Shown here piece after piece: positions 14,811 through 57,725 of a stretch of 64,000 bases of DNA. A program made the position numbers and the translations under genes. Numbering within the stretch: the stretch's first letter is position 1; each line of letters starts with the position of its first letter. Location of the stretch: sequence record NC_027399.1. The stretch is one strand, 5' to 3'. A model generated the notes under the pieces. The model made no database searches. It worked only from the letters and a program-made list of their open reading frames with translations, and was not told where the DNA came from.

Positions 14811-15365
<555 letters not shown>

Positions 15366-15373
15366 TAATAAAA

Positions 15374-15990
<617 letters not shown>

Positions 15991-55481: not shown

Positions 55482-55540
55482 AATTTTAATTTAAATAGTA
55501 CTTGACAAAAATGTTCAGTACTGATACAATAAAGAATATT

Positions 55541-55618
55541 GGCCCTTTACTCTCAAGTGGTTAGAGAATCCGACTCATAATCGGTAGGCTCTGAGTTCGA
55601 ATCTCAGAAGGGCCACCA
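55541..55618 (+). tRNA. tRNA-Ile2(CAT) (lysidine-type; Met less likely)
   Basis: GGCCCTT/AAGGGCC-A-CCA and GACTCATAATC arm closely resemble enterobacterial tRNA-Ile2; own promoter TTGACA-17-TACAAT. Confidence 0.88.
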
Positions 55619-55637
55619 AATTTTAAAACATAATATA

Positions 55638-56345
55638 ATGAAAATACAATTACAATATCCATATAATCAAGATTGGGATACAGGTTCATTAACAATTAAT
55701 CCCGAAGGTCGAAGAACTGTTATTTTATATAACAAAACTACAAAAATCACAAGTAGTACTGCTTATGCACGATATTTGTTAGCAGTGCACAATAACAGAT
55801 ATTTAACTGAAAATGAAGAAGCTGACCATATTGATGAAGATTTCACTAATGATGATATATCTAATCTTCAAATTTTGACAATAGAAGAACATAGAGCTAA
55901 ATCAATTGCGAATGGGATTCAAGCTAAATATGATGAATTTGTGTGTAAAGGTTGTGGAATAAAATTTTTAAGAAGACATAATCAAGTTAAGTCATATACA
56001 AAATATTGTAGTAAAAAATGTTCTTGGAAAAATAATCCTCCACCAACAAAAACAAAAAATGGTGACACGACAATCGATTATGATAAAGTAAAAGAATATA
56101 TAAACGATGGATTGTCAGATACTGAAATTGCAAAGAAAATGAATATAAATCGCAATTCAGTACTAAATTATAGAACTAAACACAATATACCTTCTAAAAA
56201 ATTTGCTAATGTGAATATTTTAGAAGATAATATTGATGAAATAAAACAACGTTTGCTTTCTGGTGAAAAGAAAGTTGATATATACAAAAGCTATGGTTCT
56301 TCAAAAAATGTTTTTGCAAGATTTTTAAAGAGACATGGATTATAA
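55638..56345 (+). mobile_element. HNH homing endonuclease in tRNA cluster
   Basis: EADHIDEDFTNDDISNLQILT..EH HNH motif, CxxC..CxxxC zinc finger, two C-terminal HTH-like segments. Confidence 0.8.
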
Positions 56346-56354
56346 TAGAATAAT

Positions 56355-56427
56355 GACTCTGTAGCACAATCGGTGGTGCGATTGACTGTTAATCAATTGG
56401 TTGGGGATTCGAGTTCCTCCAGAGTCG
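56355..56427 (+). tRNA. tRNA-Asn(GTT)
   Basis: GACTCTG/CAGAGTC, GCAC/GTGC D arm, ATTGA-CTGTTAA-TCAAT, G73, no encoded CCA. Confidence 0.9.
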
Positions 56428-56445
56428 CTTAACAAACCAAAGAAT

Positions 56446-56593
56446 TGTACCTAAATAACGAGTATATGGATTCTCTATGATTGTCCCTGTATGAGTTAGA
56501 GAGATTATTCATAAGAAGTCGAGTGTATAGATTCTCAAAGAAATGATTGTTTATACATGAGTTATCTTAAAACGAATATCTCAAGGTACACCA
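56446..56593 (+). ncRNA. CCA-ended ~147-nt RNA with two tandem repeated hairpin modules
   Basis: GTACCT/AGGTAC-A-CCA; two modules CGAGT.TAT.GATTCTC..ATGATTGT..ATGAGTTA. Confidence 0.6.
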
Positions 56594-56600
56594 AACAATT

Positions 56601-56649
56601 GACTCTGTAGTTCAGTTGGTAGATCTTATATAGTTACCAACCAGAGTCG
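56601..56649 (+). pseudogene. internally deleted tRNA-Asn-like remnant or mini RNA
   Basis: same acceptor GACTCTG/CAGAGTC-G-CTT as tRNA-Asn; D-arm-like TAGTTCAGTTGGTAGA; no anticodon or T arm. Confidence 0.6.
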
Positions 56650-56657
56650 CTTACAAT

Positions 56658-56722
56658 GGAAGGTGGTAATACATCAGTATTACCTTTTAAGACAGAAGAT
56701 ATGAGTATCTTCCCTTCCACCA
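56658..56722 (+). ncRNA. 65-nt CCA-ended tRNA-Ser-like mini RNA
   Basis: GGAAGG/CCTTCC-A-CCA, GGTAATAC/GTATTACC hairpin, GAAGAT/ATCTTC hairpin stacked on acceptor (6+6 bp). Confidence 0.6.
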
Positions 56723-56724
56723 CA

Positions 56725-56812
56725 CATTGTACTCTTCTCCCGTAAGGAGAATGACAAAAAACTATCCGAAAGATAGAAAGCCTGAAATAACAGGGTGCAA
56801 TTAAATTACAAT

Positions 56813-56813: not shown

Positions 56814-56877
<64 letters not shown>

Positions 56878-56882
56878 ATTTT

Positions 56883-57007
56883 GGACAAATCGTACTGAAT
56901 TAGTACTGTAATAATAGACACTTATTGCTGTAAACTGGAATGCGGTATACATTCCTTCAGATACAGAGTGTGACAGTATGATGTTAAAGGTATCCTTTGA
57001 CTGTCCA
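56883..57007 (+). ncRNA. multi-hairpin small RNA
   Basis: GGACA/TGTCC+A; ACACT/AGTGT, CTGTA/TACAG, GGAATG/CATTCC, GACAGT/ACTGTC, AAAGG/CCTTT stems. Confidence 0.45.
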
Positions 57008-57033
57008 AATTAATTTAAATGGAGTACTGAATA

Positions 57034-57234
57034 ATGTCCAAATATGTTAATCGACAAAAACGAAAAGCACGTTCCAAGGATGAAATTCTTCAATTGATTC
57101 AAGAAAATAAAAAAGATGTAGTGATTGATGAATATATTTTTCAGTATGGTAATCAACGAGGAATGGTACAAGAAAGTAATGGTAAGTATCATTCTGAGCA
57201 TTACGATCTTATTAAAAGAATTCTATTGAAATAA
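57034..57234 (+). CDS. small hypothetical protein
   Basis: 66 aa, GGAG RBS. Confidence 0.6.
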   Translation: MSKYVNRQKRKARSKDEILQLIQENKKDVVIDEYIFQYGNQRGMVQESNGKYHSEHYDLIKRILLK

Positions 57235-57244
57235 GGAGAATTAC

Positions 57245-57439
57245 ATGTTTTGGAACCTAGTTTGTTTATTTGGTCGTACATTTGTATTAGCTGTTATTCA
57301 TTCTCCTGGTATTAAAAACTTTGTTTCATACGAATTCAAAGAATCGTATCACAATAATACTGAAAAGCGTTCAGTTCAAATGTGCAAAGACTTTGGCATT
57401 GAGATGAAAGAGCCATTCAAAAAATATAGTGATGAATAA
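57245..57439 (+). CDS. small hypothetical protein
   Basis: 64 aa, AAGGAG RBS. Confidence 0.6.
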   Translation: MFWNLVCLFGRTFVLAVIHSPGIKNFVSYEFKESYHNNTEKRSVQMCKDFGIEMKEPFKKYSDE

Positions 57440-57454
57440 AGAAAGTAATCAATA

Positions 57455-57580
57455 ATACCTATCATCTAATATCAGTACTGATGCGTATCAGCAGATGGCT
57501 TGATGGGCAGTACTGACAGGATACATCGTTCGCCGGGTGCGGGTTCGGTGGATATACGTAAAGTCGTATTGGGTATGCCA
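57455..57580 (+). ncRNA. 126-nt CCA-ended RNA with tRNA-like acceptor/T-arm 3' domain
   Basis: ATACCTA/TGGGTAT-G-CCA with adjacent ATACG-TAAAGT-CGTAT hairpin (7+5 bp); internal TCAGTACTG/CAGTACTGA arm. Confidence 0.65.
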
Positions 57581-57690: not shown

Positions 57691-57725
57691 TAAGCTACCC
57701 TGTTATTTGGGTAGCTTTTTCTTTT
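57691..57725 (+). terminator. terminator ending the RNA island
   Basis: AGCTACCC-TGTTATTT-GGGTAGCT plus T tract. Confidence 0.7.

Follow-up and report, generated by a model that had tools for sequence, protein, structure and literature searches.

Stable RNAs other than tRNAs, among them species 1 and 2 of T4, were recognised in phage tRNA clusters as early as the 1970s. In the T4 record, rnaC and rnaD are annotated as small stable RNAs. Northern blots have shown T4 RNAs C and D to be expressed, and both are described as being 'of yet unknown functions' (PMC9697503). Small (119-139 nt), non-decoding, lying in a tRNA cluster beside a homing-endonuclease gene and with their 5′ and 3′ ends paired, they are the closest known kind to the RNA described in this work, a candidate stable RNA that also lies in a tRNA cluster and has the boundary syntax of tRNA genes. 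On the best reading it resembles them in kind, not in sequence. T4 rnaC has a canonical T arm, whereas the present RNA has none, and homology to rnaC or rnaD was rejected, as the covariance model of the family finds 0 candidates in the T4 genome and the folds differ. The similarity of the 5′ string of the module to a 9-mer repeated in T4 rnaC is judged coincidental, because in T4 the 9-mer is part of ordinary helices and not of tandem-G.A modules.

The stretch studied here (the window, 64,000 nucleotides of record NC_027399.1) is a tRNA island from an Alcyoneusvirus, a jumbo phage of Klebsiella similar to RaK2 and K64-1, with blastn identities over positions 56300-56800 of 100% to K64-1 and 99.6% to RaK2. 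ARAGORN and Rfam place seven tRNA genes on the + strand of the window, between 53141 and 56428, and the K64-1 RNA begins 18 nt 3′ of an intact tRNA-Asn gene (56355-56428). No ORF of at least 40 aa overlaps the 147 nt of the RNA, and the ORFs flanking it are an HNH endonuclease and small ORFs without family match. The same stretch is unannotated in the RaK2 record and, taking the RaK2 and K64-1 records together, is either blank or under doubtful ORFs, and 'hypothetical protein' calls overlap it in some E. coli phage records. In two of these, UE-S1 (L165) and BAU.Micro_ELP-22 (L167), a short 'hypothetical protein' CDS overlaps tRNA-Ser as well as the RNA's start, both being probably mis-annotations.

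Features of the RNA and its boundaries (positions in the window)
Feature	Position	Strand	Description and basis
tRNA-type 5′ leader	56439..56446	+	A-rich, U at -1
Predicted mature RNA	56447..56593	+	147 nt, from G+1 to the encoded CCA; ends by analogy with neighbouring tRNA genes
P1, acceptor-like terminal stem	56446-56452 with 56584-56590	+	MFE fold, alignment
Linker			Three A residues between P1 and module 1
Module 1 hairpin	56456..56498	+	57.1 bits with the module covariance model
Module 1, build	tandem G.A/A.G at 56460-61 with 56493-94		4-bp base, tandem G.A/A.G, 8-bp stem, A-U and U-G pairs
Module 1, top			U-rich bulge, then small apical loop
P3, helix carrying module 2	56501-56510 with 56574-56582	+	MFE fold
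P4	56512-56516 with 56565-56569	+	Homology-based structure
Module 2 hairpin	56520-56561	+	66.9 bits with the module covariance model; tandem G.A at 56521-22 with 56559-60
Spacer			One A; homology-based structure
Discriminator	A56590		If G56447 is +1
Encoded CCA, 3′ tail after the 3′ strand of P1	56591..56593	+	Sequence

Folded on the + strand, the RNA reaches an MFE of -39.4 kcal/mol (z -4.42), which 0/200 shuffles equal, and the − strand -25.9 kcal/mol (z -0.83); the hand-drawn, homology-based structure, calculated on a slightly longer piece, reaches -40.2 kcal/mol. Many invariant G.U/U.G pairs fit the + strand only, and they fix it as the strand that would be transcribed. Fold and alignment show a three-way junction made of the acceptor-like P1, a first arm (module 1) and a second arm consisting of P3, P4 and module 2. 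The original prediction, of a discrete CCA-ended RNA in which a terminal stem encloses two hairpins, the second of them supported by a further helix, is well borne out: every sequence string it had named is present, the terminal stem and the helix around module 2 both appear in the MFE fold, and a structured RNA with a tRNA-like CCA end is supported.

The two hairpins are formed by two families of direct repeats, 56459-56480/56520-56541 (82% identity) and 56477-56498/56543-56564 (77% identity), which together make up the two paralogous modules. Invariant in the module alignment are the 5′ CGAGU, GAUUCUC, AUGAUUGU and AUGAGUUA, and the combined loop pattern occurs 2 times in the window, where 100 shuffles give an expectation of 0.00. 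Each module runs, in order, through a C-G pair, a symmetric tandem G.A/A.G, a G.U and a U-A pair, six further pairs, an A-U and a U-G pair, after which come a U-rich bulge and a small apical loop. The internal loop formerly described as GAG/UGA is present, but is really a symmetric 2x2 tandem G.A/A.G enclosed by C-G and G.U pairs, and the 'conserved loop strings' are likewise present, but their conserved part is mostly an irregular internal helix, the apical loops being variable. In the 8-bp stem above the tandem G.A loop, five pairs differ between the modules and pairing is kept.

What varies and what does not is informative about the possible mode of recognition. Apical loops change in sequence and length both between modules and between lineages, whereas an internal core is invariant in all lineages (5′ GAGU, 3′ AU-(G/A)A-G, closing G, A-U/U-G pairs and, after them, UUGU), and the family alignment lacks conserved single-stranded antisense seeds. 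Variable apical loops with an invariant non-canonical core favour a protein that reads the shape of the RNA, or a tertiary interaction, over antisense pairing. Kink-turns of the L7Ae type have a 3-nt bulge 5′ of the tandem G.A/A.G on the bulged strand. This motif was rejected for the modules, whose loop is a symmetric 2x2; where module 2 of the E. coli phage copies does have a bulge, the alignment places it 3′ of the G.A on the bulged strand.

By blastn, the RNA matches only K64-1, RaK2 (where it is single-copy and 100% identical) and one near-identical assembly. More distant relatives emerge with covariance models, of which three were used: one of the module, one built from the K64-1 sequence and structure only, and one of the family. 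The module model gives one strong match in the genome of TH47, an Asteriusvirus phage of E. coli, and, in an unfiltered search of that locus, a second and weaker one 60 nt from the first. The TH47 copy lies between tRNA-Ser(GCU) and an intron-bearing tRNA-Met, and the 150-nt spacer of the TH47 type is present in 17 E. coli jumbo phages (Asteriusvirus) at 95-100% mutual identity; all copies fetched from these phages are aligned end to end by the K64-1-only model, at E values of 1e-8 to 1e-10. A pattern scan of IMG/VR added a third lineage, on a 366-kb contig of an uncultured phage (L292:993-1138), between tRNA-Arg(UCU) and tRNA-Met, at 106 bits. With the family model the K64-1 RNA scores 126.5 bits. 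The identity of K64-1 to each of the two further lineages is 61-63%, and that between those two is 84%. Scans of IMG/VR with the loop pattern otherwise returned chance matches only, without the flanking stem, and a scan of bacterial genomes with the pattern that had found L292 returned no true member, its 18 matches (mostly one cyanobacterial sequence) being rejected for lacking the stem and failing the module model. Searches of 5,426 E. coli genomes and of plasmids turned up no counterpart of the RNA.

The covariation alignments are fitted to the model and hold effectively three lineages, and, read in that light, 91.0% of the 435 cells in the alignment guided by the K64-1-only model are standard pairs, and both sides have changed in 17 of the 50 pairs. 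When the columns of this alignment are shuffled, 0/500 shuffles reach any of the five measures, and sliding the 3′ partners by 1-3 columns brings pairing down to 31-55% and double changes to 0-4. With the third lineage included, 89.8% of cells are paired and 15 pairs are changed on both sides (again 0/500 shuffles). Every helix holds at least one compensated pair: P1 has one (A-U vs U-A between lineages), and five invariant pairs; helix 2, in module 1, has 4 pairs changed on both sides and 97.8-98.4% of cells paired; in P3 three to six pairs are changed on both sides across lineages; and in the stretch of P4 and module 2, helix 5 has two to three such pairs and helix 6 three, with 93% of the helix 6 cells paired. 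The innermost two pairs of each module are lost in L292, and likewise in the model alignment of module 2. Covariation is found, in other words, in P1, in module 1 and in P3/P4/module 2, as a new family calls for. Conservation of its repeats in relatives was one condition on which the original prediction stood or fell, and both modules are kept in all three lineages. As far as sequence comparison can tell, with good evidence for the fold and for the family, this is a real, conserved RNA gene of an uncatalogued family, living in the tRNA islands of jumbo phages of the RaK2/K64-1 type and of the 121Q type (Asteriusvirus).

The limits of the gene are written in the same way as those of the tRNA genes around it. 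The tRNA genes of the island have an A-rich leader, a G as first base and a terminal N-CCA with AA behind it; identical syntax is seen in the RNA, in two neighbouring mini-RNAs and in a 126-nt RNA at 57455-57580. A leader of the form AAAGAAU..U precedes G+1 likewise at tRNA-Ser(UGA), tRNA-Met, tRNA-Asn and tRNA-Leu of the window, and the last five bases of the RNA's own leader are invariant in 10/10 members of the family. Packing is tight in the E. coli phages and in L292, with 4 nt between the CCA of the preceding tRNA and the RNA, and 5-8 nt between the end of the RNA and the following tRNA. The residue after P1 is always A across the family, and the tail reads ACCA in K64-1, Ecwhy_1 and L292, and ACCC, AUCC or AUCA in other members; most E. 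coli phage copies do not encode the CCA. True tRNA genes vary likewise, the CCA of tRNA-Ser(GCU) being encoded in TH47 and not in K64-1, and a nucleotidyltransferase of the PolyA_pol family (CCA-adding type, 369-387 aa) is found in RaK2 (15164-15526, L286) and in TH47 (334062-334424, L285). In E. coli and T4, tRNAs are matured by RNase P at the 5′ end, while their 3′ end is trimmed by exonucleases and its CCA repaired. From this circumstantial evidence we infer that the RNA is probably matured as if it were a tRNA; given that it has no T-loop or elbow, its recognition by RNase P would be by analogy only. A 12-nt direct repeat (at 56436 and 56590) flanks the RNA. It was rejected as a target-site duplication or MITE, since it equals the 'CCA end plus leader' of the boundary syntax, and it is not enriched at one mismatch (3 found vs 5.2 expected in the window).

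The nearest good promoter of sigma-70 type is at 55502-55530, before tRNA-Met, with a weaker one just before tRNA-Asn, and the next terminator-like site is at 57692-57717. The one true metatranscriptome with a near-identical piece covers 56864-57115, outside the RNA, in contigs of low depth, which is not evidence of absence. In public DNA runs, two natural relatives differ from the window by 14 and 12 substitutions in 1352 and 829 shared nt, with 0 inside 56446-56593 in either of them; as the chance of finding no change in 148 nt is roughly 0.1-0.2 per strain, this is weakly supportive of conservation. In two natural relatives (runs X10 and X12), and apparently also in OU509535, positions 55531-56348, with tRNA-Met and the HNH gene, are replaced by 754 other bases. 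A wastewater contig (run X18) joins 57231 to 57446 and is without the 64-aa ORF at 57245-57439.

The distribution of the family is patchy. Searches of whole records with the module model or the family model gave nothing significant in 121Q, Muenster, RCIP0023, KP13-7, GAP32, CBB, BF, Hallingskeid and T4, and absence from the first four, which are close relatives of holders, implies that the RNA is dispensable. The upstream tRNA differs by lineage, being Asn in K64-1, Ser(GCU) in the E. coli phages and Arg(UCU) in L292, which points to a cassette that is independent and dispensable, set in a region that homing endonucleases have reshuffled. The unit formed by the HNH gene and tRNA-Asn is common to K64-1 and TH47 at 88% nucleotide and 71% protein identity, and this 88% unit in TH47 suggests lateral exchange. 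A protein partner was sought among all ORFs present in the holders RaK2 and TH47 and missing from the non-holders 121Q and Muenster. What remained was the HNH gene that precedes tRNA-Asn, an ORF lying antisense within that gene, and a pair of tiny ORFs. The HNH gene was rejected because it is missing from holders such as E9.1, and the tiny ORFs because among holders they are restricted to RaK2 or to RaK2 and TH47. Across holders, this presence/absence screen found no phage protein co-occurring with the RNA, so that a protein partner, if there is any, should be a host protein or a core phage protein.

Compared with catalogued RNAs, the sequence has no match in Rfam 15 even at E<=10, and literature searches found no description of it. 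It is like a tRNA (RF00005) in its acceptor stem of 6-7 bp, A discriminator, CCA, flanks and location, but the cloverleaf, D arm, anticodon loop and T loop are all missing; ARAGORN places no tRNA on it, nor does Rfam even at E<=10, and tRNA identity was rejected, the fold being a three-way junction with two long arms. The 126-nt RNA mentioned above, which is tRNA-derived and non-decoding, resembles it in boundary syntax, acceptor-like stem, A-CCA tail and location. Bacterial Y RNAs (YrlA) are modular, with a tRNA-like part and an Ro/Rsr-binding helix near the paired ends, and some are phage-encoded. The present RNA differs in having no T-arm mimic and no Rfam match, and this identity was also rejected, as RaK2 and TH47 have no TROVE gene (PF05731) although control genomes do match.

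Repeated units within one RNA are what it has in common with the CsrB/RsmZ sponges and with ToxI, the systems to which it had originally been likened. CsrB and RsmZ expose many GGA motifs in hairpin loops. ToxI is a head-to-tail array of near-identical repeats of 34-45 nt, found beside, or directed at, an endoribonuclease of the ToxN type. A CsrB/Rsm-like multivalent protein sponge, or else a pseudo-ToxI decoy, would account for two near-identical modules in one stable RNA; however, the K64-1 RNA has a single, unconserved GGA, at the top of the module 1 stem (56468-56470). Module 2 lacks the motif, and so do the module loops in the copies from E. coli phages. The units are only two, imperfect, 43-50 nt long, 61-66 nt apart and set in separate junction arms instead of head to tail, no endoribonuclease or toxin-like gene is found among the flanking ORFs, and neither Csr/Rsm nor ToxI of Rfam matches at E<=10. 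Neither analogy survives this comparison, and the reading is hardly credible. Functionless debris, left by the decay or rearrangement of a tRNA gene in homing-endonuclease traffic, or by an inverted-repeat insertion with its 12-nt duplication, would suit an island so full of rearrangements (the HNH gene, a 54-nt tRNA-Asn remnant at 56600-56653 and the 12-nt repeat itself) and an HNH-tRNA-Asn cassette common to TH47 at 88%. Debris, however, is not expected to keep its fold through compensatory changes across lineages that are ~62% identical, or to keep both modules everywhere, and the 12-nt repeat is normal boundary syntax, unenriched at one mismatch, all of which makes this origin very improbable.

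With moderate confidence, we regard the RNA as one of an uncatalogued family of stable RNAs of tRNA clusters, with tRNA-like maturation and two copies of a putative docking helix. It would be co-transcribed with the neighbouring tRNAs from host-type promoters, cut by RNase P before G56447 and trimmed at the 3′ end to an A-CC(A) tail, and any unencoded final residues could be completed to CCA by a host enzyme or by the phage nucleotidyltransferase; the closed P1 stem and the CCA end would then confer stability. Acting in trans, it may offer as docking site two copies of the conserved non-canonical helix (C-G, tandem G.A/A.G, G.U, U-A, covarying stem, A-U, U-G and U-rich bulge). It is reasonable to suppose that the identical sites may each take up one copy of the same putative protein, and the likely ligand would be two copies, or a dimer, of an RNA-binding protein of the host or of the phage core. 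Alternatively, the cassette could be a processing or spacer element working in cis (an entry site for RNase P, RNase E or RNase III, for example), which organises cleavage of the polycistronic tRNA transcript or protects it and has no trans function after release. Its position, always tight between tRNA genes, its tRNA-type boundaries, its long irregular helices as possible nuclease sites and its dispensability in close relatives would all agree with such a role. Yet its neighbours differ in every lineage, so no single tRNA is served; the tRNAs of the non-holder 121Q abut with few bases between them, so a spacer is unneeded; and a duplicated, sequence-invariant, non-canonical core exceeds what a spacer needs, leaving a cis element not very likely. 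An anti-defence decoy, which would lure a host defence enzyme or one targeting tRNAs by offering the acceptor/CCA end, or the helix of a host RNA, that such an enzyme recognises, is unlikely as well: an accessory gene of patchy distribution, common to E. coli and Klebsiella phages and with a tRNA-like end, would fit it, and a host ligand is plausible where no phage protein co-varies, but no similarity to host RNA or plasmid sequence was found, and the RNA has neither an anticodon-loop nor a T-loop mimic.

A docking-helix RNA of the preferred kind could in principle go further and be a bivalent decoy, matured by the tRNA machinery, that titrates a protein of E. coli or Klebsiella; candidate targets would be a nuclease or transferase of a defence directed at tRNA or other RNA, or a housekeeping protein that binds RNA. 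Such a role is improbable, but if it were true, the RNA would be an RNA-based factor of host takeover or anti-defence carried as a mobile cassette of jumbo-phage tRNA islands, and the first function would be at hand for RNAs like the long-unexplained species 1 and 2 of T4. Whatever the function, this work adds a well-defined, covariation-supported RNA family from phages culturable on E. coli and Klebsiella, and corrects the annotation of the stretch in RaK2, K64-1 and some E. coli phage records. The duplicated putative recognition element is simple, mutable and usable as bait, and this makes the role of such RNAs directly testable.

Other elements of these islands deserve mention in their own right. 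The tRNA-Met(CAU) gene is split by a group I intron in Muenster (L003, 2710-2958; Rfam 104 bits), where it is unannotated as a tRNA, and an intron-split tRNA-Met in TH47 (L004, from about 2057) is missed by tRNA finders; that of K64-1 (55541-55618) is without intron, and the one downstream of the RNA in L292 (1140-1231) is unusually large, at 92 nt, and receives no Rfam tRNA call. In the window, the RNA is followed at 56600-56653 by a 54-nt piece in which 13-nt and 21-nt repeats of the intact tRNA-Asn gene supply the two acceptor strands. With a single internal hairpin and no CCA, this piece could be a remnant of tRNA-Asn or a mini-RNA. Next, at 56657-56725, comes a 65-nt CCA-ended RNA of two hairpins (z -4.8) with the acceptor of tRNA-Ser(UGA), occupying the position of the tRNA-Met gene of Muenster and 121Q and variable among natural relatives at 56673, 56694 and 56701. 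An element of ~85 nt with three hairpins (56717-56800, z -3.4), directly after a CCA end and without Rfam match, forms the spacer between tRNA-Met and tRNA-Asn in 121Q and Muenster, and is kept at 84-98% in >20 jumbo phages of Klebsiella, E. coli and Erwinia.
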